Source: Bugula neritina
Lineage: Eukaryota > Animalia > Bryozoa
Direction of reading: 5' to 3'
Length of the DNA: 64,000 nucleotides
Assembly (NCBI GenBank): GCA_964035545.1
Contig: OZ037773.1
Location: 9,329,751 to 9,393,750, forward strand
Shown: positions 22,843 to 63,632 of the stretch, piece after piece
How the letters are laid out: each line of letters opens with the position of its first letter
Position numbering within the stretch: the stretch's first letter is position 1
The notes under the pieces: generated by a model
Database searches by the model: none
What the model saw: the letters and a program-made list of their open reading frames with translations, nothing else
Told to the model about the DNA's origin: nothing
Translations under genes and position numbers: made by a program

Positions 22843-22956
22843 GTAAATTTACACCAGCTCACAACAGCATTGACCTATTTCAAGGTTTTGGTACACAACA
22901 GCACAGCTGCAGCAATATCTTATCCTTCTCTTTATTTCATTCTTTAATAAAATATA

Positions 22957-24516: not shown

Positions 24517-27500
24517 ATGTCTGCCAATGAGTTACACACTCTGATAGATGATAGAGACAAGTTTGAAGAACAACTTTTAAAGCTGCCTGTTGAAGACAGG
24601 TTTGAAGCTTTAAGAAAAGAGATTGGGGAAGAAAACCGCACGATATTGCACATTGCAACGACTGATGACCTAACACATATTCTAAATTTAGTTATTGATA
24701 ATGTGACAGAAGAAAGTCTGTTAGAATTGCTGATGATTCAAGATGGAGATGGGAGTACACCAGTACACTATGCTGCCAGGGGTAACTATACAGGGCACAT
24801 CCAGTGTATTGTAGATTCTATACCAGAAGAACATTTGTGCGAAGTGTTTGCTATGAAGAATGAAACTGGAAACACAGCTATTCACTGGGCAGTTGGAAAT
24901 AGTAACACAGATATGTTGCAGTGTTTGTTCAACTCTTTACCTTCAAGCCAGAAAGGTGAATTACTCAACATACAAAATCTCAGTGGCAACACAGCTTTAC
25001 ACACTGCAGCAGATAATGAAAGTTTGGAAACTATAGAAATTTTGGTAAAGAGCCTGAAGGATGCAATTGATTTGGAAAGACTTTTAGAAACAACAAATGA
25101 AGAAAGAGAGACTGCTATTCATTACATGGTAACCAATAACCATTCTGATATAATAAAATGGATGACAAGCACTTTGGATATTAAATTGCTGGAGAGACTG
25201 CTTAGCATACAAGATCAATATGGATTTACTGCGGTTAACTATGCAGCTGTTAAAGGTCATACCAACATAATAGGGTGCGTAGCAGGAAAATTGTCAGAAT
25301 ATGCATTAGTTCAGATGTTTCGTATTAGATGTGATCATAGTCATACATGTGTTCACAAAGCAGCAATGGGTGGTCACACAGATATAATGAGATGCATAAC
25401 AGAAAATCTGTCAGAATCTATGCTATCTTGGTTGTTTGGAATTCAAACCAAAGATGGCTATACATGTTTTCACTATGCAGCAATGGAAGGTCATGCTGAG
25501 ATTGTCAACTGCATATCAAATTCATTAACAGCTAAAGCGTTGAAAGAAATACTCACAAAAAACAAAGTGAAAGTGGACGTACAGCTATGCACTTTGCAGC
25601 TGAATCTGATAAAAAAATGGTAGTAAGCTGCATCTTTGAATCTCTTCCAAGGGATAATATTTTGGAAATGATTTTTACCAAAGACAACAAAAACAACACA
25701 CCATTCCAGTTAGCAGCAAAAAGTGGTCACACTGACATTTTGAAACTTATGATCAGTTTTCTCTCAGTTGAACATCTGTTGAATTTATTGCAAATAAGAG
25801 ACTCAGACTTTCTAACACCACTACACATTATTGCAAAAAATGGACATGCGTTGGCATTAGAAGTAGTTTTCGGCCATTTGTCTGTCGATAGTTTATATGA
25901 CATACTAACTTATTATGGAATCTGGTGGAATGAAACAGCAGCTCATATTGCAGCCGAAAAAGGTCATGTCGAAATTTTGGAAGTGATTTTCAAAAACTTG
26001 TCATCAGAGCAAACTTTACAGCTGCTAGAAATAAAAAATAAATATGAACAAACAGCACTAGACTTGGCAAAAATAAATAAGCAGACAGAAACAATAACTT
26101 TCATTAAGAAAAGTCAGAAAAAAGCGGAAAAAGCAATGTCAGGTAAGGCATTTATAGTAAAATAATATAAAATATGTTTTGTAAATTTCAAAGCTTTTTT
26201 TATAAGCTTTCTTTGATTATCATTAAAGATATTTTTATGTAATAGTGAGTTGGTGATAGCATAGATATTATGCCACATGTATGAGATATGAGATAACAAC
26301 GCATACTGGTGAGGATTGTCTCAATCACAGAACTACTCTGCACACAGTTTATTACTTTTACTATACATAGTTTTATTGTTGTCTTTTGTGAATAAAATAT
26401 TTTCAAATAAGGTAAAGTACAGAAGTAAAATTGCTATCTTCACATCTATAGCCTAACTATTTATTAAAAGTTTAACATTTTAAAGCATTATACTTGTATT
26501 GTATATTATGCCATTGTTTACAAGAACATTTATAACTTTTCAAATCACAATTAATTTGCAAACATCGTATTTTATTTGACTACTGAAATATGATTGTTTG
26601 CCTTTATATCTTTACAAATATTTCAGGCAAATTATGAACAAATTTCTAAAGTTTTGGTTCAACTGTGAAACTACACAAATATAAAATATGTTTCGCCTAG
26701 CTTGGCAAAAATAATTTACCAATATTTTTTAATTTACTAAAATCTACAAATAATTGACATAATTTTTATAGACTGTATAGCTAGTCTAGGAGCTAATTTA
26801 AAAGATAGACCTGATTGGCCAATCACAGAAAAGGACATAGTTGAGAAATACTTGAATGAGTCAGATGTAGAGATAGACATGATCAACCTACCTCTAAGAG
26901 CATGTACACAACCAAACACAGAAGATATGTACAACTGCAAAGAGGTTTACATATTGAACTGCATTAATTTTTTTTTGAAAATTGAATACTTTTCTCAATC
27001 TCATTTTTAGAATCAGCATTAAAATTTAGCAAATACATTTAGTTTCTGACATGATATGATGGTGCAGTGCATTTAGACATAATGGAATATAAAAGCTACT
27101 TTGTTCAAGCTGTACAACTTTTGCTATAATAACCCAACCATAATAACGAATAATTTATCATTTCCGTGTTTTTAGAAGTATTACCAGATGACTTCTCCCA
27201 CCAGAGGAAGGTGTCTTATCATCAACAATAGAGACTTTGAAGTTCCCTCTGCACCAGACCAGGTAGAATTTGATAAGAGAGAAGGTTCAGATGTTGATGT
27301 GGCAAACATTGTCAATGTCTTTACTCAGCTTAGTTTCATCTGTGAAGTTCACACTAACCTCACCAGTAAGGTAAGCTAGGTTCACACTAACCTAACCGGT
27401 AAGATATTTTGAGGGTCTTAGATAATGAATCATACTAAACCTTTACTGTAAAGACTAAGTTTAGACAAAATATATCTTACATTCTTAAATTATATCAAAC

Positions 27501-30824: not shown

Positions 30825-33800
30825 ATGACAAACATGTCAGGTGCAAGATTCCGTAAGTTGGTACAAGAAGAAAATGTGGCAGGATTTATTTGCAACTTTA
30901 CATCACTATCTTTGGATACCAAGTTAGCAGTTTTACAAGAACAGGACTTTTGTGGAAAAACGATAATGGGGCTAGCTGCAGAGCTGTCTTTGCCAGAAGT
31001 AGTTGAAAAAATAATAGACAGCATACCTCCGGATGAGCTGTGTGACATAGTTGCAATAAAAGACAAGCATGGAGACACTCCTCTACACATTGCTGCATAC
31101 TTTGGAGAAGAGAAAATAGTGAAATACGTACTCAATTCCAAACTAACCACTGCTCAACTGCGCCACATCTTAAATATAAGAAATAACAACAGCATTTCAG
31201 TTCACCAGCGTGCAGTTGCAGAAGGACATCTTAGAATGGCTGACACAATTTCAGACCGACTACAGCAGATTGAAAGAGAAGAAGATAAAAATGTATTGCT
31301 TCGAAAAGCTGTTGAGTCAAGTCAAATGAGCAGAGTTGAAACCTTTATGAATTCCATGTCTAAAATTGAATTTTATAGTCAGTTAGCAGCCCAAGATAAA
31401 GCTGGTAACACAGTTGTTCACATTGCAGCTCACTATGGATACAAAGAGATGATAGAACTGATGATACAAAGATTAGAACAACCTGATTTATACAAATTGC
31501 TAAAAATACAAAACAACAAAGGTTTTACTATCTTACTTGTAGCAGTGTGGAACAAAAACATTGAAACAGTAACACTAATTTTGGACAGCTTACCTCCAGC
31601 TGCTATGAGCGAAATACTTCAGATTCAAAACAAGCATGGTGCTACTGCATTTTCAATTGTTGTACAAAATGGAGTAATGGAAATTTTAGCGGTTATGGTA
31701 AGAAAACTCTCCAAGGCTGATCTTTATAGGCTAATTGTGCTAGCAGACAATGATGGTGATACAGCTATGCACTGCGCTGCATTTGGAAACCAGGCATACG
31801 CTGCTGTTTTCCTCTTAACCAGACTAACAGGTGAAGAAGCCAAGGATGTATTACAAGTAACAAACAACGATGGTTTTACTCCCATAGCATATGCTAATAG
31901 CGATGCAAACATAGATTTTGTTTCATCTATAATAACTTTTCAGAAACAAAAAGAGGCTAACCTAAAAGGTGAGAGCAAACAAGTGCGTGTTCTTATGCAG
32001 AATTGATTGGTAAATTAATTTGAAGTAATGTATTTTCTTTTTAGCACAAAAATATGTTCAACCTTAGTTATTAGTATATCCTTATTGTGTCAAAAAATAT
32101 TTGGCTATCCATTAACATGAGTTGTGGTTATTTGCCACTTGCTATAGTTGCTATAGTCAGTCGCTAATTACTAATAACTAGTAGCCACAGTCACTATAGT
32201 TATTATATTTTAAAGTTACTAGTTTTACATAGTTATACAATTAGTTGTCATTTATTAGTTGATTAATATAGTTTATTCAGCGATAATGTTTGCAATTTCA
32301 TGATGTGAAAAGTTAATAGAATTTAATTATATATATGCTATTTATTTGAGATATATTTTATGTTATTAGAACCAGCTGTACCAGCTAAAAGTATTGCACA
32401 AACAGCTGAAAACACAGAACTGGAAAATAGCGACACACCAAGCTGTGAATATTACGAAGACCCTGATAGTGCAAAAGGTTAGTTTCATGAAGAAATGGCA
32501 AACAATGACTCACCTAACTAAAAAGTATAAAATATGCATATTATGTTTTATTGAGGATAAAGTTTGGTGTAATACATTAGTGAGGTGAATTGCTCTGAGA
32601 ACTTAAACAAGCCTGTTGCTAAGTGAAGTCATGACAGTCAACGCACTCTTCACTAATTATTATATATCTCTTCTCTATAGCAACTAGAAACATATTTCTC
32701 CAACGTGTGATGCATATATATGTTAGGCAGGATGTATTACAGGTGTCCTGCATGTGTCCTGCAGGTGTCCTGCAGGTGTCCTGCAGGTGTCCTGCAGGTG
32801 TCCTGCAGGTGTCCTGCAGGTGTCCTGCAGGTGTCCTGCAGGTGTCGGTTAACAGCACCAGCTAACCATGAGTAATAATAATAATTCGTTTTCGTTGCAT
32901 GTATGATGATGCTATATGAACAGTGAGATTCAAAAGTTTACCTATAGCATGCTTTTATGCTTATAGTCTCACTATTCAAAGGCTAAAATAGCTGTGGGAG
33001 AATTTCAAGTGTGGGATAATGTATAGCCAGTTAAAAGGATTAGCAACTGTAAACTTTTCAAATTTTGTTCTTGCTTTCAGCAAAATCAAAGCTTGAAGAG
33101 CTTCCTCAAACTATAAGCTCTGTCAGCAGTGGGATTTCTAGCAATGCTGAAGCTTCTTTAGTAGAACGTAAGTTCTAAGCTTCATAAACCCAGATATACT
33201 ATTTACCTAATTTATATACAATCATCTTTAAAAACTGAAACTAATTCAGTTTTTTATGTAATAATGTGTTATAAAATGAAGACAACTAAATGACATATAG
33301 GTGAAATCATATTATCAACAGTAAGTTACAGATGCTTACATATTGCATAACAAAATCTGTGATGGTTATTTGTATATACAATGCTGAGCTTTCTTTAGTT
33401 CTTCAAGAGTTAAGTCTAGGAAAGAAGTTGGGTAGTGGCGGACAGGCGACTGTGTATGAGGGCACTTGGTTGGGTACTCCGGTGGCTATCAAGATGTTAG
33501 AACATTCTGTTGAAGCAGACTTGTCAAAGATAGCCGAGGGATACTTTGATGAATACAATGCCATAAAGTGAGAGATAAAATATAATCAAGATTATTACAA
33601 AACATTTTATTCAAGGAAAACATTCCTTTGGTTAGCAGTGAATAATAAGTAAATGGCTCTTTACTGATATGTACCCCACCTGATCATTATATATAACATA
33701 AATTATGGAAATGCATTAGCTATGGTTCTCAAACTAGTTTGTTGTTTCAATGTCTAACTTTTACTGTAGGTCTCTGCGACACCCAAATATTGTGCAGTTT

Positions 33801-36904: not shown

Positions 36905-38608
36905 AGAATTGATAAACTTGAATGCATGCTTTTGCTTTTCAAACTATTTTATGCATTGTGCATTTAAATTTTTAAGCTACTATAAATAAATAAGCCTAGT
37001 AAAATAATCTGAAATTTGACATTCAAGTGAATTAAATTTGACAGTCTATTATTAAACTTCTAATTAAATAAGAAACTTTTTCTTAATTTAATTTTGATCA
37101 ATTATACAACCCAAAAGTAATTTGGATTTTTAAACAGAAAATAATTATTACACGTAGACTTTGCTTATTTTAAAATCATAGCAATTAATTATTGTAATAA
37201 ATTAGGCATTTCATAAAAGCAATATGTACTTACGTTCTATTGAAAATAAAATTTATTTGAATTTTATTATAAATCTGACCGAGATTATTGCTCACATTAT
37301 TCAAACAGCAGTTGGCAAAGGGCCAGAATATTGGTTAGAAAGACTTATATTGTAGAGTATGAATTCAAAGCAATAATACATGTAGAAGTGTAGATGTTCT
37401 GCAAGTGTAAGATGCAGTTAAAAGTGATAATTTACTGTATAGGCTGCTATAGACATCTGACGCAACTATATATTAGGTTATGGCAAAATATTACTTTGCT
37501 CATTAAGAGTAATTATTGCTGCACTTTCTTTTAATTTTTTAAAAAGACAAGCCAACAAAAGCCCAAATGATAGTTTTCCTCCGTTTAAAAATAATAGACA
37601 CTGCAAAGATATAACGTTTTTTTATAATATAATACTTATTAGCCTACTCAATGTTGCACGTTTCATCTAAATTTATACAAGTTTATACCAGCTGAAGCAT
37701 GTTATTTTAAATCAACATGCAATTTTATAAGTACCTATCAAGTTATCATTCTTATTCTTCCAGCTCACTCTCAACTCGCAGTGTTTTATAAGTGTTGAAC
37801 AATTAAATTGTTTAAACCATACCATTTATGTTATATCTTATATACCGTATATATATAGCTGTATTATCTAAAGCCTATGTCAACTAGGTGGTAAAATTTA
37901 GTTTCAGTTGTAACATAGTCCTGTCATCTAGTGTACAGCAATGTATGTCTATATATAGCATTATGTTCTATATAGCACAGTCCTGGTTAATTTAGCTTTG
38001 CATACCTTTTAACCTCTGCAGTTCAGCACTTACCCTACTTTTGTTTGTATAAATCACATGTTTTATACAGCAACTGAGACCGTGAAACTTATTTTAAACT
38101 GCCTTCCTGCAGCTGACATGTGTAAAGTGACTTCAATTCCAAACAATAAAAGAAACACTGTCTTGTCTTGGGCTGCACAATGTGGACTTATGGATGTGTT
38201 AAGACTGCTTGTAGATATTATTCCACCAGAAGAGCTGTATTCACAAGTTCTGGTAATAGATAATGATGGTGACACAGTCATACATTGTGCTGCTTACGGG
38301 AACCAATCAGAAGCTGCTGTATACCTGCTTGACAAGTTGACGGAGAACCAAATTGGAGAAATATTTGAAATACAAAACAAAGAAGGTCACACTCTGATTG
38401 AATATGCAAAAAGTAAAGCTAACCATGAGTTTGTGACTCTAATTGAAGCTTATTTGAAAGATAGAGAAATTTTTCCAAAAGGTAAAGTTCAACAACCTGC
38501 TTTCAGCTTTGGTTGGAAACAATCAACATAATCTTAAAATTTTGAGCTTTTGCATTATGCATAGTATATTATATTAGTACTCTTGTACGTGTTGGAAGTA
38601 TGTAGGCC

Positions 38609-39020: not shown

Positions 39021-39914
39021 TATGGATCATTTTACTTAATTTAGTACACACCGGAAGTTTCCAGTTTTCAGCTATTTTTCACAATTTAGCTGCTAATGAA
39101 CAAGGGTTTTTGCCCAAAACTAGTTAAATGTCAATCAACACACAAATAATCGAGGTTCTTTTTAATTTTGATTGATTTTCCATGTTTTTTTCTAATTATT
39201 TAGCTACTTTTGATTGCAGACCGTTATGTTTTTTTTATGACCTGTAGAAGCTGCTGTAGTTGAATAAAAAATTGAACAACAGCTATAATGAGTTGAGCAT
39301 TTTTCTCGGATCAATTTGCATTAACTATGAGAAAGATATGCTGGCCAACATTATAATTTTTACAGGTTGTATCTTTGACAAAATTACTTTTTTAGTGCAA
39401 AATGGCTTGCAATAATCTTGAAATGTTTGACTTGCAGCTAAAATGCTGCCTCCGCTCTAGACTCAAAGTACATATATAATTCAAAATGATGGATGCATAG
39501 AAAATAAATTTAAATTTATTGTAGACAGAAAACTGAAAGTTGACTTTAACCAGAACACAAGTTCTGCTTACTCCTACAAGAACACAAGCTTTGCTGACAG
39601 TGGAATATCACTTGATGTTGAAACCAGTGTAGTAGACAGTGAGTGTATAAATTACTTCTTTGATACTGCAGGTACTAGATAATATATACCAATGATGGTC
39701 CAGCAAACAGATTCTAAACTATAAGCTGCACTCAAATGATGCGCCAATTCAGCGGTTGGCTTTGTTGAGCTGTTACCAGAGCAATCCTAGCTTTTTTACT
39801 TACGAATGTGTGGTTTGGTCTGCATGAAAATAAGTACGGTACTCACAAAAAACGGTTTAAAGAATTCACTTTTTGAAGCCAAACTTTAGTAAACAAAATA
39901 CAACTGTGAAGTGG

Positions 39915-40710
39915 TTTTAGAATGTCAAATATAAAATTGTGTGTGACAGTTTGGTATAAGCTTAAAAATTTCAACTGCTATATGTTGCACTGCTTGGCCG
40001 TTGATACATGAAAAGTGTTTTGCCGGTTCAAAATGTAATGATGCAATGCTATAAGTAAAACTCAAGTGTTTATTGCTTGTATATATAACAAAATTTTTTG
40101 TATCCAAGTGACATTTAGGCTGCATAAAACTGTTGAGGTGCCATCGAGCTTAGCTACTCTAATTTTGGAGTATAATGTAAACACAGATAAATATTATAGA
40201 CTTTTATAAACTCACCACATTTTAATTGAAAATTTGGCACAAATATTTTCAATAATGTTAAGTAATTTTAGAATGTCAAATATAAAACTGTGACAGTTTG
40301 GTATAAACAGTTTAGAAATTTGAAACTGTATAGCTGTGATAATGAAATTTATATGTTTTTTAGTTAAAGTTGGAAGTTCATGTAATGATATCTTGCTTCT
40401 ATATATAAGTTTATAAAATGGAATTTTCAATAATTACTTAACAAATTGTATAGCTATGTACACTGCTTGGCCTTTGATACATGCAAGGCATTTTGTTGCT
40501 TCATCATATACGTAATGGTGCAACGCTAAGTGCAACTGAAGTTTTGTTTATGTAAAACAATACCATCTCTACCCAAATGGCATTTAAACTGCATAAAGCA
40601 TTTGAGGTGCTAGCCAGTCTACTCAACTTTAGGGATGATAATGTAAACACACATATATATTATAGACTTTGATAAACTCATAACCTTTTAATTGAAAATT
40701 TTGCACAAAT
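39915..40710. repeat. Diverged tandem duplication (~330-440-bp units) in K2 intron 2
   Basis: ttttagaatgtcaaatataaaa...gtgacagtttggtataa at ~39915 and ~40266; aatgtaaacac...tattatagactt...ttttaattgaaaattt at ~40175-40235 and ~40640-40705. Confidence 0.7.
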
Positions 40711-41630
40711 TTGTCATTAGTATTCATCAATAAAATGCAAGTTAATAGACATAATTAACCAATAGAATACATTTCTAAAGTGAATAATTATTGCTTTACT
40801 AAATATAGGCTTTAAATCTTCACTTCTTTAAAGTGACAACATAAGGGATTTGTGGATATTGAATGCTCATTTTATAGGTTTTACCACTTTACGTTTGGAA
40901 AAGTAAAACCCCAAATTACATCCAAATTTAATCTCTGTTAACAGAAAAAATGTATACATAACGTCTATAAGCTGCATTTATTTCTTATTTCAGTGCTGCA
41001 CAGTTTAAAGGTTGAAGAAAAGCTAGGCAGTGGTGGACAAGCAACAGTGTATAGGGGGACTTGGTTGAGTACCCCAGTGGCTATCAAAATCTTACCAAAT
41101 TCCATGGGTATAGACTTGTCCAAGACATCATTACAGGAACTAGAGGGGTACAATGCTGTCAAGTATGGGGAACAATACAAGTTGTTTACATTTTTTAAAT
41201 TTATCTAACCACTATTGAAGGCTTCTTTTAAATCAAACAAGGTGTAGCATTCTGTTTTCCTGATGCTTTTGTCTTTTGCTACAGGAACCTTCGACATCCA
41301 AACATTATCCAGTTCTTTGGAATTGGGCAGCTAATGACAGATATAGGTCTGGTGATGGAACTCTGTGACACTGATTTGAAGATAATGTCTCAACAAATTG
41401 GACAGAGTGCATGGAGATGCATTGGTAAGAGTTGTCTGAAAGCTCGATTATCTTGGTAAGTTTAAGACTTCTCTGTAGAAAATATTGTTGGTTTTATACT
41501 AAATCAAATTTGTTATTTCGCTAACCAACAAAGCATAACAACTTAGTTTGAGTTGCGCTGTGTTACATTGCGATTTTTTATGTTTTGTGCAATATGATTG
41601 CTTGTATTTTGTGTTTTGTGCCTTTTGCTT

Positions 41631-43605
41631 TGTGCCTTGTGCCTTGTGCCTTGTGCCTTGTGCCTTGTGCCTTGTGCCTTGTGCCTTGTGCCTTGTGCCT
41701 TGTGCCTTGTGCCTTGTGCCTTGTGCCTTGTGCCTTGTGCCTTGTGCCTTGTGCCTTGTGCCTTGTGCCTTGTGCCTTGTGCCTTGTGCCTTGTGCCTTG
41801 TGCCTTGTGCCTTGTGCCTTGTGCCTTGTGCCTTGTGCCTTGTGCCTTGTGCCTTGTGCCTTGTGCCTTGTGCCTTGTGCCTTGTGCCTTGTGCCTTGTG
41901 CCTTGTGCCTTGTGCCTTGTGCCTTGTGCCTTGTGCCTTGTGCCTTGTGCCTTGTGCCTTGTGCCTTGTGCCTTGTGCCTTGTGCCTTGTGCCTTGTGCC
42001 TTGTGCCTTGTGCCTTGTGCCTTGTGCCTTGTGCCTTGTGCCTTGTGCCTTGTGCCTTGTGCCTTGTGCCTTGTGCCTTGTGCCTTGTGCCTTGTGCCTT
42101 GTGCCTTGTGCCTTGTGCCTTGTGCCTTGTGCCTTGTGCCTTGTGCCTTGTGCCTTGTGCCTTGTGCCTTGTGCCTTGTGCCTTGTGCCTTGTGCCTTGT
42201 GCCTTGTGCCTTGTGCCTTGTGCCTTGTGCCTTGTGCCTTGTGCCTTGTGCCTTGTGCCTTGTGCCTTGTGCCTTGTGCCTTGTGCCTTGTGCCTTGTGC
42301 CTTGTGCCTTGTGCCTTGTGCCTTGTGCCTTGTGCCTTGTGCCTTGTGCCTTGTGCCTTGTGCCTTGTGCCTTGTGCCTTGTGCCTTGTGCCTTGTGCCT
42401 TGTGCCTTGTGCCTTGTGCCTTGTGCCTTGTGCCTTGTGCCTTGTGCCTTGTGCCTTGTGCCTTGTGCCTTGTGCCTTGTGCCTTGTGCCTTGTGCCTTG
42501 TGCCTTGTGCCTTGTGCCTTGTGCCTTGTGCCTTGTGCCTTGTGCCTTGTGCCTTGTGCCTTGTGCCTTGTGCCTTGTGCCTTGTGCCTTGTGCCTTGTG
42601 CCTTGTGCCTTGTGCCTTGTGCCTTGTGCCTTGTGCCTTGTGCCTTGTGCCTTGTGCCTTGTGCCTTGTGCCTTGTGCCTTGTGCCTTGTGCCTTGTGCC
42701 TTGTGCCTTGTGCCTTGTGCCTTGTGCCTTGTGCCTTGTGCCTTGTGCCTTGTGCCTTGTGCCTTGTGCCTTGTGCCTTGTGCCTTGTGCCTTGTGCCTT
42801 GTGCCTTGTGCCTTGTGCCTTGTGCCTTGTGCCTTGTGCCTTGTGCCTTGTGCCTTGTGCCTTGTGCCTTGTGCCTTGTGCCTTGTGCCTTGTGCCTTGT
42901 GCCTTGTGCCTTGTGCCTTGTGCCTTGTGCCTTGTGCCTTGTGCCTTGTGCCTTGTGCCTTGTGCCTTGTGCCTTGTGCCTTGTGCCTTGTGCCTTGTGC
43001 CTTGTGCCTTGTGCCTTGTGCCTTGTGCCTTGTGCCTTGTGCCTTGTGCCTTGTGCCTTGTGCCTTGTGCCTTGTGCCTTGTGCCTTGTGCCTTGTGCCT
43101 TGTGCCTTGTGCCTTGTGCCTTGTGCCTTGTGCCTTGTGCCTTGTGCCTTGTGCCTTGTGCCTTGTGCCTTGTGCCTTGTGCCTTGTGCCTTGTGCCTTG
43201 TGCCTTGTGCCTTGTGCCTTGTGCCTTGTGCCTTGTGCCTTGTGCCTTGTGCCTTGTGCCTTGTGCCTTGTGCCTTGTGCCTTGTGCCTTGTGCCTTGTG
43301 CCTTGTGCCTTGTGCCTTGTGCCTTGTGCCTTGTGCCTTGTGCCTTGTGCCTTGTGCCTTGTGCCTTGTGCCTTGTGCCTTGTGCCTTGTGCCTTGTGCC
43401 TTGTGCCTTGTGCCTTGTGCCTTGTGCCTTGTGCCTTGTGCCTTGTGCCTTGTGCCTTGTGCCTTGTGCCTTGTGCCTTGTGCCTTGTGCCTTGTGCCTT
43501 GTGCCTTGTGCCTTGTGCCTTGTGCCTTGTGCCTTGTGCCTTGTGCCTTGCACCTTGTGTCTTGTGCCTTGCGCCTTGCGCCTTGTGTCTTGTGCCTTGT
43601 GCTTT
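41631..43605. repeat. (CCTTGTG)n 7-bp satellite, ~1.9 kb (~275 units), in a K2 intron
   Basis: Essentially perfect from 41631 to 43550 with degenerate edges; open in all six frames. Confidence 0.98.
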
Positions 43606-46600
43606 GTATAAGTGTGTGTGTGTTTCCAAGTAGTCCCAAAACAGAAGCAGCTCTAACAACCTGCCTATGTAGCTGAAAAAAAAACATACTCAACAAACAA
43701 GCTGCAAAGATAAATTACTAATTTTGAATAAAACTTCACAGGACATTTGAAAAAGCTCATAATAACTGTCATGCATAAGATTGTTCATTGTGACTTGGCA
43801 AGATGCCATGCATGGCATTAAAATTCCATGAGTACACAATTCCTACTATATTTTCTTGTAGGATAAACTACTGAGGATTATTAAAGATTCTCTGTGTGGA
43901 TTAGTTTATCTTCATGATAAGAACATGATTCACATGGATATTAAACCACATAACATACTGGTAGGACAACTTCTGAATTAAATAAAAAAGATGAAAATAA
44001 TGCATATTATATGTAAAATACTAGATTAATATTTCATCTAATAATATAACGATTTAAACGTTCATTGTTTTCATGTTATGATACTATATTATATACTACT
44101 GTGTTGATTGTAGGTTCAATCTGGAAGAGGAAAACTGGCAGACTTTGGTTTAGCTGACTTGGCAGAAAACTTTCAGGACATGTCTATTACGTATTCTCCA
44201 TGGCAAGGTGTGTTTTGTATATACGTTTTGTTTTTCAGTCAATTAAACTTCCCTTTAAAACTTGCTATTACAAACCTTTTAAAGCTACATATATTTAGCA
44301 TCTCGCATACTTCAATCTGCTCAAATTATAGACATCGCAATTCAAAGTTTTAAACATAGGAGTATGATTAGTTCTCCTGTACCAAGTATAATTACTTTAA
44401 AGTTTTGTTTATCCTTCATTGCAAAACTAATTATTACTTAAAAATGTTTAATCACACGCACACGCACACACATATATATATGGAATTTCTAAAGCCTGTT
44501 TTCCATAGAATTAATGTCTAAATTTTTTGCCTGAAAAAGCTTTTTAAACAGCAATTTTTTTTTTTAGCTATTTTGAAAAAATGCTCATTTCTAAATGGTT
44601 CTCTATAGCAGTAATGAAACCATTTGGAATATAATGTGAAAACTTTTATTGTTTCTGGTATGGTAAAATATCATTATAACATTATATCAAATAAAATTTG
44701 GCCATGTCTTTTGTCATGGAATGAGTACAGCTGATTTCTGCTTCAATTTCTTTGTTTTAGGAACTTCATTGTACAGAGCTCCAGGGCTACTACACAGATA
44801 TGCTCCAACCAAGGCAGCTGACATGTGGTCTATGGGTGTAACAGCACTCGAAGTCTTCACAGGTGAATAAACCAAAGCAACTGATAATTACACATTCACA
44901 GCATCCTGTCAACGTGGCATGTGTGAAATATAGTTATTCTGCAGATTCTGTACATACATAAGTTGCATTAAAAATATTATTTTATTCTACAGGAGAACTT
45001 CCTTATCCTCTTGAAAACTTTGTTCGACATAAGAGAGCGAGAGTACCCAAAGATCTCCTTGACAAAAAGCTTCCTCAGTCTCTCCAGATGTTGTCAAATA
45101 GAAATCAGAAAATTATGCAGTTGGTGTTGACCTTTGAACCTGACCAGAGATTGTCTGCAGCTGATTGGCTTGAAAGACTGCAAAACTATCAAATTTAATT
45201 TTATTTTAATTGAATTCAAATTGTCAATAAATATATCATTTGCACCACTATATACCCACAACTGGGGTGACAAAGTTCAATTTATACAAACTTTTGTTAC
45301 ATCAGTTTATCGAGTATGTTGATGAAATATCTATTTTGAATCAACATTTTTACTGCCTATGTTGATTAGCAGAGTAAATAGTGTATCCATTGAATATTGC
45401 TAAAATTGAGTGATTATTTGATAGATGTTAATTGTCTCCACCTCACCTTAATCTGTTTGTTTGCTTTTAGCGTGATAGCTTTGATATTTTAGATTATTAT
45501 TTTCCAGATAATTTACATTTTTCAATATCAATATTAATATATGGCTTGCAGTTTCAAATCACTACAAAAATTTGTCTTTCCGAAACACTAAATATTCTGC
45601 ATTCTCACTGCCATTCAAATGCTAATAATAGCATATCCATTGTTTATTACACTAATAGTAAGAAGAAAGGTAATTAATTCAACATAAGCTGCAACAAATG
45701 CTACTAAAACAACACCAAAGTATGTTTGTTTACTGAGCATAGATTAGATTTGATAATTTCTCACTAGACTATTAAGAACCTTGGTGTGCAATGTTTATAT
45801 ATTTCATAATTTTCACAACTGAATGGATAACCTTCAAGAAGTATTATTTATCACATCTTGGAGTTATCCCACCTCATCAATTTAGTAAGCAAAGTATCCT
45901 ATTCTATATATAATCAAGTTGGTAGTTGTCTTACCAACACTATTCTTTTATTTAACAGGCTTGAAGTGCTTAGCTTAAAGGCACTAACACATTATTTATT
46001 CACTATACATACAACTCTAAATAACTGTTTTACACCTACTCAAGCAACGCCCATGTTTGATTGAAAATTTATGTCAAATTTTTTAACACCAGTTTATTTT
46101 CTTTGTTGACAACTCTGGCAACTCAAGCAAAAACTAATGCTTTATACCCATTTATTTGGGTATTACACAGCTGAAATAGTACATCATATACTAGTTTCCT
46201 TTTGTTTAATTACTGCTGCATGTTTCACTGATTTCTTACAAAGTTATACCAACTTATACCAGCTGTATCTAGTATCTTATCTCAAGCTAGCATGTGAGTT
46301 CTTCAGATACGTTATCATTCTCATCCTCCCATCAAACTCCTAACTCGTTCTGTTTAAGAGTTAAATTATCAAACTGTGCAAACATTATGTTATATTAATA
46401 CCTTATACTAGCTGTATTATCTAAAGCCTCAGTGAAATATAGACAGTACAGTTTTATTTTACATATACATCAATGGTATCTTATAGAGTATAGTATAACT
46501 TGAACTTTGATAAACCTGCAACTTAGTTCCTTTAAAAACACTCATATGGAACTAGTTTAGTCTCGCGCTTCTTATATTTAGTGTAGACACTATTCTTCTA

Positions 46601-46941
46601 TGCAAAGATGATATAGGTTTTTATACAGCAGATAACTTGTGCAAGAGCAGGCATTTAACAAGTTAATTTCATTTCATTATTTTAGGTTTGGTTCAGTAAA
46701 ACAATCTGAATAAACTACATGACACATTAGCTATATTTGCAACCACTTACTCTCTAAATAGTGCTGGATCTGTGTATAGCTGACTTGCTGTGTTTAGTAT
46801 AATGTGTGAATCAAATTTAAACACAACACTGAAAAGAATATAATATAATTGTATGAGCATATTTTTGATACCTTAAAAAAATTTGGTCGATATTTTATAA
46901 ATTTTAGAATTACTGTTGATCATGGAGAGATAATAAACCAA

Positions 46942-47060
46942 CAGCCAATCACAAGCAGTTATTTGTTTACACTCTATGTTATATATTATATGCGAGGTAC
47001 TATACTGGGTCATTCAACAACTGTATGCTGAGTATATAACTGTGGCTTAGAAATAGTGTA
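46942..47060 (+). promoter_or_regulatory. Conserved upstream block with a CCAAT box, shared by A4 and K4
   Basis: cagccaatcac..gcagttatttgtttacact..atgttatatattatatgcgaggtactatact occurs at 46942 and ~62694, each ~125 bp upstream of the ATG. Function is inferred only. Confidence 0.4.
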
Positions 47061-47066
47061 GTTAGT

Positions 47067-50000
47067 ATGCCAACAAGTAAGAGTTTCAATAGGCTGTTGG
47101 AGTTTATTAAGGAAGGAAGTGAAGTTGGATTTAAACAAATGATATGGTCTCTGACTGCTTCACAATGGCTAGATGTTCTTAAAGAACAGGATGATAAACC
47201 GGTTACGTTACTTGAATATGCAGCAGGATGGGGTCTTACTGAGATAGTGAAAGTTGTCATAAGATCAGTACCAGCTGGTGAGCTTCATGGTATTCTAGCT
47301 ATACAAGACTGCAAGGGTAATACACCTTTTCACGTGGCAGCTTACTTTGGGCACACAGAAATAGTGAAGCTTATAGCTAACTCTATTCTCACAGCTGATC
47401 TGTATCGTCTGTTGAAGATACAAGATAAGAATGGAAATACTCCATTAAGATGTGGATTGGTGGAAAAAAAAATTGAGACTGTAAAATTTATTTTAAACTG
47501 TCTTCCTGCAGCTGACATGCGTAAAGTGATATCAATTCCAGACAATCATGGAACCACTGTCTTGTCTCATGTTGCAGAATGTGGACCTATGGATGTGTTA
47601 AAACTGTGTGTCGATATTATACCACCAGAAGAGCTGTATTCACATGTTCTGGTAGCAGATACTGATGGTGACACAGTCATACATTGTGCTGCTTGCAGGA
47701 ACCAATCAGAAGCTGCTGTATACCTGCTTGATAAGTTGACAGGGAACCAAATTAGGGAAATATTTGAAATACAAAATAAAAAAGGTTACACTCCTTTTGA
47801 ATATGCAAAAAGTAAAGCTGACTACGACGGTGACGATGACTTTGTAACAGCAGTTAAAGATTGCCTAAAAAAGAGAAGAATTTTTTTAAAAGGTAAATTG
47901 ATAAACAACTTTTGTAAGCTATAGCTCAAGCAATAACCAACTATTTAAATAATGATAACTATGGACCTATAATATTTATGCTGAAAATGTACATCAATCT
48001 TGTTTAATATGTTATAAGGAAGATTTACTTGAGGGAAATTATAGTCCTAACACCCTGTATTTTAGACAAGAATATTCTGAGAGCAAAATAGTTTCTAATA
48101 ATTTTAGACTATTTAAGTTGTGGTCTATTCATCTACTCATTTCTTTCTATGGCCATTCCTTAATATAGCAAACCAAAGTTATAATAGTAATATTTGCATA
48201 GAGGATAAATTCATTGTAGATGAAACAGTGAAAGCTGATTTTCACCAGAACACAAATTCTGCTGACAGTGGAATAACACATGATGGTGAAACCAGTTTGG
48301 TACACAGTAAGTGTGAATATAAGAATCATTAACGTACCCCGTATTACATGATACGTATTACATAAGACGCAAAATGTGTGGTCTAGTAAATAAAGACGCT
48401 TGCAGTAATCAAGCACTATGTCAAAAAATGATCAAGTTTGTCGCTGGCATGCTATTCACACTTGCGTGGTTTGCTTAGAATATAATTATATTATTTACTT
48501 TGGTTTCAGTGGAAAACTACATCTGCCAAGTAGTTTTTGAATGTCAACCAAAAACTATGTTTTAAAAACTTGGAAATTCAAAGTATATAAAAATTATCAA
48601 TGTTGTATGTTTTTAGTTGACAGTTTGCAGTACCTTAGTTGTAATAAATAAGTTGGAAAGACTGGTCTTCAAAAATAACCTTATCTGCAGACCAATTTAC
48701 TATTACATAAAATTCATGCAAGTTTATAGTCACTACATCGCTGAGAGAACCCACGAATTAAAGAGCTTTTTAAAGAGAAATTATGACTGCATGCATGGAT
48801 ACTTTTTCTACCATCACCGATAGCTTTTGCTGGACCAATGACTTTTTGTTTACTAAGCTAACGCTACATAACCCTTAGACCACAGCTGCTCCCATCTTTT
48901 CGACACACAGGTCTCTGTAAAAATCTCTACAACAAAGCCCACTTTTGAAATATAGTTTTAAGCCAAGCTGACTTAGAGTTTTATAAGCCTATTTAGTAAT
49001 AGAGCTTATAGCTTCCAGGTAATTAATTGCAGGTAGTTAATCTACTTGAATAAATAGATGCCAATCTGACTATTTGTGTTTAAACTTTATAGTATCAAAA
49101 TACTAAAATTGAAAATAAGTTTTTTACTATGATTTCTTAATATTATGCAAACTCTTAATAAGCTATAAACTCTGCACCACTGAATAATTTTTTGTCATTT
49201 TCATCATAACTGCAGTACAGTAGATAAAAAATGTTCAGTTTGCTTTATTTTTCCTAGTTTTTAAGTTTATAGTCACATATGAGAAGTCTATAACTATAAC
49301 CAACTGTAATACCTGGTTCTCTGTATATATACATTGAACTTTCAATTAATCTATTATATTGCTACTGTAGAGAATTTTCTTCAACTGTAGAAATAAATAT
49401 AAAATATATATTCACCCAGCCTGAACAAAATATTCCAGGATTTGCAGCTACTCTAGAAGCTAGTTCAACAGCCCGATCTAATTGGCCAATCACAGAAGAG
49501 AACATAGTTGAGAAATATTTGAATGAGTTCGATGTAGAGGCAGACATGATCAACCTACCTCTAAGACCATCTACTCAACCAAACACAGAAGATATGTACA
49601 ACTGCAAAGAGGTTTACGTATTATCTAGCAACAAATTTTATTAACGATTGAGTAATTTTTTCGATTTCTTTTTTAACATCAGTTTTATAATTTTGCTAAT
49701 AAATTTACTTTCTGGCAGTGCTGTAATTAAAAGTAGTCACATGACAGCTAATGCAGTTTTACATAGTATAATTCCAAACCAAACACCAGACTATTGGAAC
49801 ATAATTGTTAGGGCATAATTGTTAATGAGCACCAATTTGACATAGTATAGCTCGAAGCTGTGTTTAAGGATACGGCTTTTGTTACAATAAGCTAACTGAT
49901 GAATTTACAATCATTGTTTTTAGAAGTATTACCAGATGACATCTCCCACCAGAGGAAGGTGTCTTATCATCAACAATAGAGACTTTGAAGTTCCCTCTAC

Positions 50001-52163
50001 ACCAGACCAAGTGAAACTTGATAAGAGACAAGGTTCAGATGTTGATGTGGCAAATGTTTTGAATGTCTTCACTCAGCTTAGTTTCATCTGTGAAGTCCAC
50101 ACTAACCTCTCCAGTGAGGTAAGCTAATTTCACACTAAACTCTCCAGTTTAAGGTGAGCTAAGTTCACACTAACCTCACAAGTAAGGTACGTTAAGAGTT
50201 ATAGCTAATGAAGTATACAAAACTTCTACCCTACAGATCGAGTGTAAGCAAAGCATCCTATATTCATAAATTATATCAAACTCAAAAAATAAATATTTCT
50301 CAAATTTTACAGCATGAGAGGTGACCTTGTAATCAGTGGTCAAACTGAGGGGTCAGCAAGGATTTGGGTACCCCACCATTTTTGCTAGACCTTGGCCACT
50401 GCTAGTATTAGTCTAGCTAATGCAATGGCTCTATTGAAAAATTTAACATACTTAACAGAATTGCTATATAATGCAAAGTTATTTCAATGATCATTCTAGT
50501 GGAAAAAAATTACAATAATTTTTAAAAATTTTGTCTGTTATAGACTCCATTTAGATCTGATCTATAAGTCAATGCTGTTATTAGCTCAAGATCATCCTTT
50601 TCATTCTAAAAGGCGAGAATATGAAATGTGTAGAAATATTTTGAATTTGTAGGGAATGCTACATGTGTTGAACCGTGAAATACAAAACACAGAACATGAG
50701 AGATTTGGAGTTAGTGCCTTTATCATAATGACTCATGGGACTGAAATCTTTCTCTACGGTACAGATAGTCGCCCAGTCAAACTGTCGGACATGTTGGATC
50801 TTATGTCTCCATACGTATTCAAAGCCATGGCTGGTAAACCTAAAATAGTTGTCATCCAGGCCTGTTCTGGTGGTGAGTTTTATCATTTAACTATAATCCA
50901 TTACTTTTTTCTGATATTGAGATGGAGTAGGCTGTTACATTTAATATCTATGTTTACTCACATCTATACATACATAAGTATACTTACGTGTTTACTTGCA
51001 TTATTCCTAATATCATCTTGTAGACAGACTTTTATTTGCATCGACACTTATTATATATATACTTGTATATACTTACATCTATACTTACATAATATATTAT
51101 ACTTACATATATACTTATATCTACATACACCTGTACTTAGTCTTGTAGACAGATCAGATCCTCTAGGCTTCTATACTGACGACTCTCCAAGCACTGGGGG
51201 AACAACTCCCAAATGGAAATCGGATCCATTTCCTGGAGATCATTTGTCTACTGATGATTTGTTCTTGTTGAAAGCCAGTTTTCTCAGTGAGTACAATCAC
51301 ATCTGATGAAGTTAACTAGTGCTGAATGCTAAACGTTAGATAATTAATAACTAACATAATATAATAATATAATCATTATATATATGATATATACATATAT
51401 GTATACAACTTATTATGTTAATAAACTTGTATAACCTTCTTGACTGACAATCTTTTAGGTAACACAGTCTGTATGTTTTATGTGTTGCAGGTTTCCGTTC
51501 AATGAGACATACTCGTCAGGGTAGTTGGATGATCAGAGCTCTGGTGTGTTCACTGTACAATCACAGCTGTGATGAGGATATTGAGACCATCTTCAAAAAG
51601 GTGCATGGATGATACGGTACTAATAAGTTTATGATAGCTACTAACAGAAAGGCAAAAATTTTGAAAGATATTCTTTATACTTTTTTATTACAGCTTTAAA
51701 GAAGTAATAAATGCAGTAATTAATATATAGACTGTTAGTTTACTTATACTTAGTATAGACTACCGCTTTTTTGCTTTTTTACTCTCACAGTGCAAACAAG
51801 CAACACTAAGATGTACATGCTTTCCAATAGCCATGGTACAAATTCAATCTCCTAACAAGTTAGATGAATGCATGACTAAATAGCGGTGATGGAAAAACTT
51901 CTACCTCTAGTTGTAGCATTAAAAATGTATGATTATAATAGCTAGATGAATGTATAAGAAGTAAGAACTATATAAGCGTACACTTTATATAAAAAAAATA
52001 AATTCGGATTTTACAGGTAAAGAATATTGTTAGAGCAAAGAGTATTGAAGCATCTAGAAGAGATTTCAATATAGGAGGGCAGCAACCAACTTTTGAGAGT
52101 TTTGCAACTAAGGGAAGACAACTTTGTTTGTTTCCTAGATTCAGTCCTGCACAAACCGAGTGA
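47067..52163 (+). CDS. A4: ankyrin-repeat caspase, ~631 aa, intact; ANK exon and first linker exon are of the kinase-gene (K2/K4) type
   Basis: Exons 47067-47892, 48220-48306, 49439-49611, 49924-50118, 50653-50872, 51149-51286, 51491-51600, 52017-52163; 1896 nt, open. THG, QACSG and SMRHTRQGSW are present. Confidence 0.8.
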
Positions 52164-53449
52164 AAGCTTTGAAAGAGATAAGCAAATCTGTTTTCATTTA
52201 AACGAAAGATATTTGCATAAACCAAACTATATTATTTTTTTTAAGAATCAAGCATTTACTGTCTTGCAGCTCATTTATGTCTTTTTATTAACAATGACAA
52301 CCTTTACTTTCCCTCTTTTTAGTATTTAAGGATTTTCTATTTTATTTCTACCTTCATCTTGTTTGCTTATATGTAAAGGTCGATTTGTGTCTTCAGTTTT
52401 GACAATTAATTTATTACTGTGCATGCTGAAGATGACAGCAACAGTCTTAGCTGTGTGTGCTTTAAATATCATATTAAATGCATATAATATACTGTATAAA
52501 AAGATATGTAGCTCATTCCCTTTTGTCTATGCACATGTAAGCCTTTGAAGCTTTCAAAAAATTTTTGAGAAGGAATAAATATAATTTAAGTTTGTTTTCT
52601 ATACTTAAATCTGCAATATTATTAAATACTATTAAAATCAAGTTTCATATGGGAAAATAGTATCAATGAACTCGTGAGCTTTGAATGACGTGTGAATAAC
52701 TTTAAAAACAGCATCGGTCATTGTAGCTATATAGTTATCTCCCCTAACTATATAGAGCAAATGGCTAGGAATAGTTGTGATCTATAAATTAGAACGATAT
52801 CTCTATGACAATAACATACATTATGTGATTATAGTGTTATTTTGAAAGACAAAAAAGGCTGTTCCAAAATGTTATAGTCAAGTGCTATAATATATAGTTA
52901 CAAAGTAGCAATACATACTGTGTAACATTTAGAAGCTGAGAAAAGCTATTGAATATCCCATAGAATATTAATAAAGAAATGGTTTTAGAGCTGCTATTCA
53001 TGGCAGCTGGAGAGAGAAGTTGCAGTAAAGACTACTAATACAGGCATCAAAGCCAGCAGGCAAACAGAGATCATTAATTTACATAATAAAATGATAATAA
53101 TTTATCAATTACAATATAAGTGATAAATTACTAGATTATACCCCAGCAAGATAAACTAGATAGAACATTCTACACCTGTTTATTGGCTCTTATAGCCAGT
53201 GTCAAAGTCATCATTAAACCATTGTTATCTAGTGTAAACTACACTCCCCTTTTAATCTTTCTTCGAAACTATGATTGTTACGCATCAGTTTGCAAATAAA
53301 TAAATGTAATGGGTTTTTCCAGTGATAGTCTTTCTAGCTACTCACACTGTTCTAAATGTTATATAAATTACTAATACTAGCTTATCATCAGTTGATTAAG
53401 TACAAGCCTGAGATTGAGGTATAGCATCTAAACGGTAATCACATTACAC

Positions 53450-60615: not shown

Positions 60616-62818
60616 AGAATGGATAAACTTGAATGCATGTTTTTGGTTTTCAAACTATTTTATGCATTGTGCTTTTAAATTTTTTAGCTTTCAATTAAAA
60701 AATTCAAGAAATACTGATGAAATATTATGAAAAAAAGTTGCAATGGTATAAAGTTTACAAGATAGTTGCAAAAATATTTTCTAATAGTGAGGAAATTCAA
60801 AAAACAAAAGCAAATTGATTAAATAATATTTAAATGAAAAATGAGATACAACACCTTATGGTTGCTTTTGTTTTTTAAATTTATCAACTGGTTTTCTTTA
60901 TTCAGTTGCTGTTGCTTACGCTCCAAAACTTCTTTTTCCTGTCAAACATAATAGTTAAAAGAAGTAAAATATTTTAGTAAGGAAAATTTAGCCAAGTGAC
61001 TTTGAGTTTTTTGAAATGAATTTATCAAGTAGATGTTTAGAATAAATAACTATCATGTTGCAGTTAGTTTGATTCTTTGAAATCTGAATTATTTAATAAA
61101 TGATATATTTTTAATCACACCCAGTGACTTTATGGCATTCAAAAAACAAACTATAGAAAAGTTACTATAGATAAGCCTATATAATATATAATTATAATCT
61201 GAAATTTGACATATAAGTGAATTTAATTCAACACTCTATATATTACTAAATTTCTATCTAAATAAAAGACTTATATTTACTTTTATTTTGATCAATTATA
61301 CAGCCCAAAAGTAATCTGGATTAATAAACAGAAAATAATTTTTACACGTAGACTTTGCTTATTTTAAAATCATAACTAATAATTATATTGTTCTAAATTA
61401 GGCATTTCATAAAAGCAATATGTACTTACGTTCTATTAAAAATAAAATTGATTTGAATTTCTATTATAAATCTGACTGAGATTATTGCTGACATTATGCA
61501 AACAGCAGTTGGCAAAGGGCCAGAATATTGGTTCGGTATAGTATCATGGATTCAAAGCAATAATATAGTTATAAATGTAGAAGTGTAGATGTTTTGCATG
61601 CAGACATTATTACACTTTATGTGCAAAATACAGCTAAAAGTGATATCTCACGCATGTATATATAGGCTGAAAGCTCAGCATTTAGCTTCCTTATACTTAG
61701 CAGCCCTATGTTATATTAAAGCATACAGTATGCTGTGCTATAGACATCTATATATTAGGTTATGGCAAAATATTACTTTGCTAGCTAAGAGTAATTATTG
61801 CTAATCTTTCTTTTAATTTTTTAAAAAGACAAGCCAACAAAAAACCAAATGATAATTTTCTTTGGTTTAAAAATAATGGACACTGCAAAGATAGGTACGT
61901 TATGCTGTATAATATAATACTTATTATTCAACGTTGCATGTTTCATCCAAATTTATACAAGTTTATACCAGCTCAAGCATGCTATCTTAAGTCAACTCGC
62001 AATTTTATACGTACATCAAGTTATCATTCTTATTCTTCCAGCTCAATCTCAACTCACAGTGTTTTATAAGTGTTGAACAATTAAATTGTTCAAACATAAC
62101 ATTTATATCATCTTATACTAGCTGTAATATTTAAAGCCTATGTCAACTATATATGGTGGTAAAATTTTGCTGTACCTCTTCTCTTACCTCTTCTTCTTTA
62201 GAAAGCACTAGAGCATGTAGCAAGTGGTGCTCCTCAATAGGTTGCAGTCTTTGGTTAGCTCGTACATGCATGTCAACTAGTTGTCAAATGACTAATGTGC
62301 ACATCATTACGTATAAATGTACATCACTTTTACCGTATAGAAAGTTTAGATTTAAGTTCTCGTACTGTCTTTGGTAAAAAGCTATTGTTATAATTGTAAC
62401 ATAGTCCTATCCTTTAGTGTACAGCAATGTATATCTATAAAACATCATGTTCTATATAGCACAGTCCTATAAATACCTGGTTAATTTAGCTTTGCATACC
62501 TATTAACCTCTGGTGTAGCACTTACCCTACTTTTGTTTGTATAAATCGCTGTGACTTATGACGTGTTAACTATGAGCTTAAACATTTTATAAGGATTGAG
62601 GCTAGTTTTGTCATATTCCAAAGGTCATTATCACTTTCCTCACCTTGAAGCAATGCTACTAAGATGAATTAGGTAAAGGCAATTGAACTATATCAGCCAA
62701 TCACATGCAGTTATTTGTTTACACTATATGTTATATATTATATGCGAGGTACTATACTAGGTCATTTAACAACTATATGCTGAGTATATAACTGTGTCTT
62801 ATAACTAATGTAGTGAAT

Positions 62819-63632
62819 ATGTCCACAAGTAAAAATTTTGATAGACTGTTGGAGTTGATAAAGGAAAAAAATAAAATTAGATTTAGGCAAAAGCTAAGTT
62901 CTCTAAGTGTTTCACAACGATTGGATGTTCTTAAAGAACAGGATGATCAACAGGTGACGTTACTTGAATGTGCAGCAGGATGGGGTCTTACTGAGATAGC
63001 AAAAGTTGTCATAGCTTTAGTACCAGCAAGTGAGCATTATAACATTCTAGCTATACAAGACATTAATGACGACACACCTCTCCATGTGGCAGCTTACTTT
63101 GGGCGGACAGGCATAGTGGAGCTTATAGCAAGTCTTCTGCTTACAGCTGATCTGTATCGTCTTCTGAGAATAAAAAACAAGGATGGGAATACTCCGATAC
63201 AATGTGGATTGAAGAACAGAAGAATTGAGACCGTGAAATTCAGTTTAAGGTGCTTTCCTGCAGCTGACATGTGTGAAGTGATTTCAATTCCAGACAATAA
63301 AGGAAACACTGTTTTGTCTTGGGCTGCACAGTATGGACTTATGGATGTGTTAGTACTGTGTGTAGATATTATTCCACCAGAAGAGTTGTATTCACAAGTT
63401 CTGGTAGCAGATAATGATGGTGACACAGTCATACATTGTGCTGCTTACGGGAACCAATCAGAAGCTGCTGTATACCTGCTTGACAAGTTGAAAAAAAGCC
63501 AGGTTGAAGAAATTTTAGAAATACAAAACAAAGAAAGTCACACTTTGATTAAATATGCAAACATTAAAGCTAACCATGAGTTTGTGACTCTAATTGAAAC
63601 TTATTTGAAAGATAGAGAAATTTTTCCAAAAG
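62819..63632 (+). CDS. K4: first (ANK) exon of the full-length paralog of K2; gene continues past the window
   Basis: ATG at 62819, open to AAAG/GTAAG at 63632. The C-terminal half and the following intron match K2 (38075-38850), so a kinase effector is expected downstream. Confidence 0.8.

Follow-up and report, generated by a model that had tools for sequence, protein, structure and literature searches.

Initiator caspases such as CED-3, caspase-8 and caspase-9 carry long interaction prodomains. It is also well established that chimeric genes arise at the junctions of tandem segmental duplications or by unequal crossing-over within clusters, as in Drosophila jingwei and Sdic and in plant NLR clusters. 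Here we describe a gene of the bryozoan Bugula neritina, A4, in which an ankyrin-repeat (ANK) module and linker of the type carried by neighbouring kinase genes are followed by a caspase. A4 lies in a window of 64,000 nucleotides (nt), the whole stretch of DNA that was analysed (OZ037773.1:9329751-9393750), from a genome of 216 Mb with 33% guanine plus cytosine (GC) and spliceosomal introns. The view was widened by 20 kb upstream and 40 kb downstream, and coordinates below 1 or above 64,000 are still counted from the start of the window. The genes of this tandem cluster are named by their parts: A0-A3 and Am1 are long-ANK caspases, the K genes are ANK-kinases, and A4 and A5 combine a K-type ANK with a caspase. 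Their order is Am1, A0, A1, A2, A3, K1, K2, A4, K3, K4, K5, A5, followed by two orphan kinase exons. We consider it likely, from the sequence comparisons below, that A4 is a chimera and arose when two neighbouring genes of this one cluster recombined illegitimately within phase-1 introns.

Like the initiator caspases, A4 is predicted to have a long N-terminal interaction region, p20 and p10 parts with a His-Cys dyad, and an Asp-rich intersubunit linker; unlike CED-3, caspase-8 and caspase-9, its prodomain consists of ankyrin repeats and not of a death fold, and its active-site pentapeptide is QACSG. The locus also resembles the chimeras of tandem duplication, both in its gene order (A3-K1-K2-A4-K3-K4-K5) and in the 3' flank of A4, which is colinear into K3 and K4. 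However, the paired segments of the two duplicated copies are unequally diverged, unlike those of a single tandem duplication, and a later gene conversion or a second event is needed. A caspase family that may be set beside this one is that of amphioxus, with 45 caspases, domain recombination within the expanded family and the death-fold prodomains CARD, DED and DD (PMC3196919). That study does not mention ankyrin and traces no breakpoint. The two animals have in common a lineage-specific expansion of caspases and the joining of different N-terminal interaction domains to the caspase domain; the prodomain of A4 differs in being an ANK array, and one that is shared with a kinase family.

The closest described process is exon shuffling by intronic recombination, as described by Patthy and reviewed in PMC8001218. 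A4 shares with class 1-1 shuffling the domain boundaries at introns, the phase-1 junctions, a symmetric 1-1 linker, the joining of non-homologous introns and the presence of a dispersed repeat within the interval of the breakpoint. According to that review, most modules of class 1-1 are extracellular, whereas those of the A4 cluster (ANK, TKL-like kinase and caspase) are of intracellular type. The event is also young: parental gene types, intron remnants and leftover kinase exons still lie side by side. Exon shuffling is usually inferred from old, eroded events, but here a region of about 90 kb contains both parental gene types, a chimera in two copies, the remnants of both introns and the leftover kinase exons, thus the mechanism and the direction of the effector swap can be read directly from the sequence. 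A4 is a clear case of exon shuffling through introns, an unusually legible example of a known process and not a new mechanism.

Anatomy of A4 and the origin of its two halves

A4 occupies 47067-52163 on the forward strand, with eight exons, an open reading frame (ORF) of 631 amino acids (aa) and GT-AG borders at every intron. The gene and its flanks are made up as follows.

44453-47066 (+): 5' context of K type, comprising the last two kinase exons of K2 (k4 at 44760-44867 and k5 at about 44990-45195, both +), intergenic DNA and a promoter-proximal region common to the upstream regions of K5, A5 and K4.
47067-47892 (+): exon 1, an ankyrin-repeat module of 275 aa, of the K2/K4/K5 type, ending in phase 1 (Pfam Ank_2, 8.3e-32).
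48220-48306 (+): exon 2, an 87-nt linker of phase 1-1 (ETVKADFHQNTNSADSGITHDGETSLVH), with homologues in K2, K4, K5, A5 and K1 exon 3.
48307-49438 (+): junction intron, which holds the proposed recombination breakpoint and is found genome-wide only in A4 and A5.
49439-49611 (+): exon 3, an A-type pre-caspase segment starting in phase 1, with 73-80% aa identity to exon 3 of A0-A3 and the AG acceptor at the same position.
49924-50118 (+): exon 4, the start of caspase p20 (Peptidase_C14, 2.6e-7; 83-95% aa identity to A0-A3).
50653-50872 (+): exon 5, a caspase p20 part that contains both catalytic residues, His 455 (in THG) and Cys 498 (in QACSG) (Peptidase_C14, 6e-8; PDB matches to CED-3 and caspase-3).
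51149-51286 (+): exon 6, the Asp-rich intersubunit linker, with a homologous exon in A0-A3 and A5.
51491-51600 (+): exon 7, caspase p10 with the GSW motif (Peptidase_C14, 2.4e-4; 89-94% aa identity to A0-A3 and A5).
52017-52163 (+): exon 8, the C-terminal end and stop codon; by alignment of the exon 8 peptides, its 3' half has the derived state of A0-A3.
52164-53100 (+): A-type 3' flank, colinear with the flanks of A0, A1 and A3, which leads into K3 as the A3 flank leads into K1.

Tandem ankyrin repeats are recognised by Pfam in the A4 product, with Ank_2 in four stretches and, in addition, Ank, Ank_3, Ank_4 and Ank_5. On the caspase side, PF00656 falls on exons 4, 5 and 7 and spans profile positions 1-206 of 233, with THG at residues 454-456, QACSG at 496-500 and GSW at 557 of the 631-aa model; A5 shares these motifs. 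By these domain and motif matches, the product is a predicted caspase; Asp-specific proteolysis and autoprocessing would be expected of such an enzyme. The eight exons are presumably spliced into one messenger RNA, and the ANK part may be a binding or sensing prodomain that controls caspase activation, the same type of sensor driving a kinase in the sister genes.

An earlier reading of the window from its letters alone (the sequence-only reading) had described A4 as a kinase-type ANK exon and linker fused to a caspase, assigning the ANK exon to the K2/K4 type and not to that of A1-A3. The front half of the gene bears this out, although A4 is not unique in its make-up but one of two such genes. 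In BLAST, 46942-47822 aligns with K4 62694-63574 and 47471-47909 with K2, both at 82.5% nt identity. The 5' flank at 46942-47066 has the same 82.5% to the region upstream of K4, and 44453-47827 matches the K5 locus at 80% over 3.4 kb and the A5 locus at 84%. The aa identity of the ANK exon is 66-73% to K4, K5 and A5, against 38% to K1 and K3 and about 28% to A1-A3. Across the whole genome, the K2-type ANK exon occurs in only five places, which are A4, A5, K4, K5 and the 5'-truncated copy in K2. In the ANK tree, A4 and A5 together with a subclade of K2, K4, K5 and the metagenome contig L007 (support 98/98) form a clade with support 100/100, and K1 and K3 fall outside it.

The linker exon belongs with the ANK exon. 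Between 48244-48314 and K2 39576-39646, the identity is 84.5% nt. All linker exons are symmetric (1-1): they measure 87 nt in A4 (48220-48306), K5 (71702-71788) and A5 (80546-80632), and 114 nt in K2 (39525-39638) and K4 (64676-64789), where 27 nt have been duplicated internally. Exon 3 of K1 (33081-33167) is an 87-nt homologue with the same SSGIS...SLVE motif. Thus the earlier statement that the A4 linker matches that of K2 and equals K1 exon 3 in length is correct, but the linkers of K2 and K4 are themselves 114 nt and not 87. A tblastn search with the linker gave no match in the extended cluster outside K2, K4, K5, A4 and A5, nor any at the unlinked ANK-caspase loci. The K2-type linkers and those of A4 and A5 all carry ADSG(I/V)(S/T)xD(G/V)ET(S/T)(L/V)V, and K1 has SSGISSNAEASLVE in its place.

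The back half is of A type, as had been claimed for the downstream exons. From 49437 on, the exons and introns of A4 match A1, A2 and A3 at 77-85% nt, and the back half including about 0.9 kb of 3' flank matches A0-A3 at 70-85% nt. In the caspase tree built from exons 4-8, A1, A2, A3, Am1 and the pair of A4 and A5 (pair support 81/83) form a clade with support 100/99 against four unlinked ANK-caspase genes. The two trees are thus incongruent in the way that had been predicted, the ANK of A4 grouping with K2, K4 and K5 and its caspase with A1-A3. The introns had been called A3-like; the longest colinear match is indeed to A3, but A4 is mosaic, with A5 as its closest relative. A TA-rich tract of 38 nt is present in an intron at 51356-51393.

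The claim that the module junctions lie in phase 1 agrees with what is found across the cluster. The ANK exons of A1 (5283-6906), K1 (30825-31968), K4 (62819-63632), K5 (70077-70890), A4 and A5 all end in phase 1, and the acceptors of exon 3 in the caspase genes and of the first kinase exon are both phase 1.

The junction intron and the second copy

The homology found by BLAST stops at 48314 on the K side and begins at 49437 on the A side. Within the junction intron between them, local alignments and a repeat search reveal three features.

48528-48631 (+): K-type intron remnant, from the intron that leads from the linker exon to the first kinase exon (local alignment to K2 40260-40377 with z 7.8 and to K4 65413-65530 with z 11.9, against shuffles).
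48709-48901 (+): copy of a dispersed repeat of about 190 nt, inside the breakpoint interval, and present at least 39 more times in the genome, on many contigs (67-85% identity); 97% identical to the copy in A5.
49375-49432 (+): weak A-type intron remnant, from the intron before the first caspase-side exon (local alignment to A3 26653-26713, z 4.2).

Because the parental remnants end at 48631 and begin at 49375, the breakpoint, which the sequence-only reading had placed in 48307-49438, can be narrowed to 48632-49374. The remnants of both parental introns in one junction intron indicate that the exchange took place inside phase-1 introns. Recombination mediated by the 190-nt repeat was considered as well and is unsupported, considering that the parental introns of K type and A type have no copy of it.

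The second copy, A5, lies at 79397-84457, 32 kb downstream of A4 and past the end of the window, with the same eight-exon architecture. Its model is open, with 625 aa and GT-AG at all sites, and its product is 79% identical to that of A4. The A4 locus at 44001-52199 is colinear with the A5 locus at 84-94%, junction intron included. Since the junction intron occurs only in these two genes, one fusion followed by duplication is indicated, and a false join in the assembly becomes very unlikely. The two junction introns are 94% identical overall and 97-99% identical over 48400-49200 (against 80750-81550), whereas the flanking exons are only 80-90% identical (synonymous divergence, dS, about 0.23). 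No Rfam family, tRNA or long ORF was found in the junction intron to account for this near-identity, and a recent gene-conversion tract is probably its simplest reading.

Both modules of the chimera have diverged together and under constraint. The ANK of A4 has a dS of 0.26 to that of A5, and the caspase a dS of 0.21-0.23; the similar values point to their joint divergence. The ratio of nonsynonymous to synonymous differences per site (pN/pS) between the two genes is 0.33 for the caspase (Fisher p 1.1e-6) and 0.60 for the ANK (Fisher p 0.0065), thus both are under purifying selection. For the linker and exon 3 it is 0.86, a value that is not informative.

Outside this assembly, the JGI metagenome contig L008 aligns with 46317-48608 at 89.9% in BLAST over 2312 aligned columns, or about 93% when only mismatches are counted. 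Its splice sites agree with those of A4, its intron 1 is of the short A4 type, and the contig stops 300 nt into the junction intron. L007, the second such contig, is K5-like. A search of the metagenome contigs with exon 3 for an orthologue of the junction returned nothing.

We propose the following course of events. The recipient would have been a K2-type gene, consisting of the ANK exon, the 87-nt linker exon and TKL-like kinase exons; the kinase N-lobe of the K genes falls in the TKL group, its nearest relatives being MLK and B-Raf. The donor would have been an A-type gene, in which the caspase exons come after a long ANK exon. Six caspase-side exons would then have replaced the kinase exons behind the linker, and the reading frame would have been kept because both introns are phase 1. 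The predicted product of 631 aa would consist of the ANK (275 aa), the linker, a pre-caspase segment of about 58 aa, and caspase p20/p10 with an intact His-Cys dyad. The fusion would have happened once and been duplicated into A4 and A5 (dS about 0.21-0.26), both of which would have stayed open under purifying selection. The broader claim that sensors and effectors can be exchanged through these introns draws on this one inferred event in phase-1 introns, later duplicated, which is no sign that swapping took place repeatedly.

One caspase exon has at least 138 matches in the genome, and A4 suggests that, in the very large ANK-caspase repertoire of this animal, one type of ANK sensor can serve more than one output. 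If A4 is expressed, A4 and A5 with their K sisters would be a natural matched pair, the same front being joined to a caspase or to a kinase, and a comparison within the pair could be used to study the target of the ANK module and its way of controlling the effector.

Direction of the exchange and competing explanations

Several observations bear on which gene received what. The ANK-linker-kinase architecture is old, as K1 and K3 share it with K2, K4 and K5 at deep divergence (38% in the ANK, 60-82% in the kinase exons). The A4/A5 caspase is close to that of A1-A3 (dS 0.23-0.30, and 0.23-0.25 for A4 taken by itself). The long-ANK caspase architecture is old as well, since Am1 has it and so do unlinked genes whose exons 4-8 have the same structure. 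Behind A5 there is a 200-nt copy, in inverted orientation, of the K-type k3-k4 intron (85642-85844), then a long TA microsatellite, and then two orphan kinase exons, both open (k4 at 86344-86451 and k5 at about 86580-86780), with no k1-k3 present. These orphan exons are what is left of a kinase gene, the front of which now ends in a caspase. Taken together, the age of both architectures, the low caspase divergence and the orphan exons indicate that a kinase gene received a caspase cassette.

The opposite direction, in which the front of K2-type ANK and linker was older with the caspase and was then captured by the kinase genes K2, K4 and K5, would agree with the ANK tree, where A4 and A5 branch outside the K2/K4/K5 subclade and not inside it. 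The best ANK matches outside the cluster are likewise ANK exons of unlinked ANK-caspase genes (33-34%), and exon 8 of A5 has an ancestral look. We nevertheless regard this direction as highly improbable. K1 and K3 have the homologous 87-nt linker and the kinase at a much deeper divergence, the A4/A5 caspase falls inside the local A clade at a dS of only about 0.23 from A1-A3, and orphan 3' kinase exons remain behind A5. Moreover, it needs two events, where the transfer of a caspase cassette into a kinase gene needs one.

How the transfer came about is a further matter. The order A3-K1-K2-A4-K3-K4-K5 and the flanks of A4 and A3, which lead into K3 and K1, fit a tandem duplication with its ends in the two introns. 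The duplicated block of caspase-K1-K2 and caspase-K3-K4, which the sequence-only reading had named, is indeed colinear, but it has two layers of age, with identities of 0.75-0.87 over the caspase part and flank and of 0.91-0.99 from about 30100/52720 onward. The dS values are unequal too: for the ANK, 0.43 between A4 and K5 against 0.19 between K4 and K5, and for the caspase 0.25 between A4 and A3. A single tandem duplication would leave its paired segments equally diverged, and it was rejected as a complete explanation since they are not.

A number of findings sit uneasily with a single, simple fusion that yields one working gene. A4 is closest to A5 only up to about 51400, and beyond that it is nearer to A0-A3. 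Exon 8 of A5 (84302-84457) is closest to an unlinked ANK-caspase gene (contig C2:31062517-31062665, 83% nt), compared with 76-79% to A4 and A0-A3; this is either the ancestral state or an ectopic conversion. The history is thus mosaic and fits no single simple event, and further duplication and gene conversion have shaped the locus. In addition, the ANK exon of L008 has 46 nt of deletions, not a multiple of three, which split its ORF in two; the cause may be a broken orthologue or an error in the contig. For the linker exon and exon 3, no constraint is detectable. Among 1.84 billion protein representatives, there is no spliced ANK-caspase protein near A4, although the library may omit the records of this genome; the representatives near A4 are only short single-exon ORFs from metagenome contigs. 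In the search of sequencing runs, no RNA run was found to hold the A4 stretch. One metagenomic run marked 'RNA?' has 5% of the words, the share that DNA from a relative at about 8-10% divergence would give; one DNA run, which may be the source sample, has 79% of the sampled words.

The lack of a matching RNA run, the unconstrained linker and exon 3 and the disrupted ANK of L008 would also be expected if the two halves merely adjoin, a decapitated stump of a kinase gene being followed by a 5'-truncated caspase copy, each of them silent or separately expressed. Pseudogenes are common in this cluster, and in-frame Met codons in exons 3 and 4 could start a caspase-only product. However, two such remnants ought to have decayed in the manner of A0, A2, A3 and K2, whereas both halves are open and have been under purifying selection in A4 and A5 since the two split. 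In both genes, exon 2 keeps an intact donor and exon 3 an intact acceptor, with matching phases. We therefore hold two separate remnants to be unlikely. A false join inside 48307-49438, which had been named as one finding that would overturn the fusion, is hardly credible. The junction intron, 97-99% identical between the copies, does form a repeat of about 1 kb within a tandem array, which would favour this reading; but the same architecture recurs in both copies with flanks 10-20% diverged on either side, and the intron occurs nowhere else, so that no K or A gene with it is available to be joined by mistake. Independently of the assembly, L008 spans exons 1 and 2 and extends 300 nt into the junction intron, and the DNA run cited above contains most of the sampled words, although it may come from the source sample itself. 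A chimeric A4 formed within the cluster is thus the reading that we prefer.

A bolder scenario treats the cluster as one sensor with two outputs. In it, a fast-evolving ANK sensor would be connected by the conserved linker to either a caspase (death) or a TKL-like kinase (signalling), and the linker motif (I/V)(S/T)xD followed by G or V would be a possible caspase cleavage site. The motif reads ITHD-G in A4, ISRD-V in A5, VSRD-V in K5 and ISLD-V in K2 and K4, and its Asp could, speculatively, mark a processing site. If so, the kinase paralogues, as well as the caspase paralogues themselves, could be freed from the sensor or activated by the caspase paralogues. We consider the scenario as a whole quite improbable at this stage.

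Decay and repeats in the surrounding cluster

Most A-type genes in view look like pseudogenes. A0 has a frameshift in exon 5 (-740 to -517), A2 has an in-frame TAG in caspase exon 5 (17167-17386), and the ANK exon of A3 is split by a frameshift (25587-25623); A1 is the only intact gene among them, and A4 and A5 are intact too. On the kinase side, K2 is without about 675 nt that are present in K4 (38058-38481 against K4 62548-63222), including the start codon and the first 400 nt or so of the ANK exon, and its remaining ORF begins at an internal ATG (MFYTATETVK...). An intron of K2, between k2 (41283-41399) and k3 (43862-43978), is occupied by a near-perfect microsatellite of the heptamer TTGTGCC at 41616-43607, with 285 copies and 99% matches over about 2 kb, which causes a GC spike at 42-44 kb. 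A metagenome ORF from a relative (P0034, 217 aa) has a frame-shifted k3 and an intact k4 (GTPRYRAPELL...TALEAL), followed by the second half of a K-type ANK exon, and may be another recombination product or a processed copy.

In each A-type tandem unit, a relic of a divergent caspase exon 5, 53-58% identical, lies upstream of the ANK exon (3012-3167, 11550-11756 and 22185-22393); in the relic at 11550, the active-site Cys is replaced, with QAD instead of QAC. The tandem units of A2 and A3 are interrupted by a stretch of about 2 kb (19373-21350), which contains an ORF of 381 aa on the reverse strand (19524-20669) that is reverse transcriptase-like and, judged by eye, LINE-like. Fragments of another repeat-like ORF family are found at 3549-4007 and at 22937-23347 (-).

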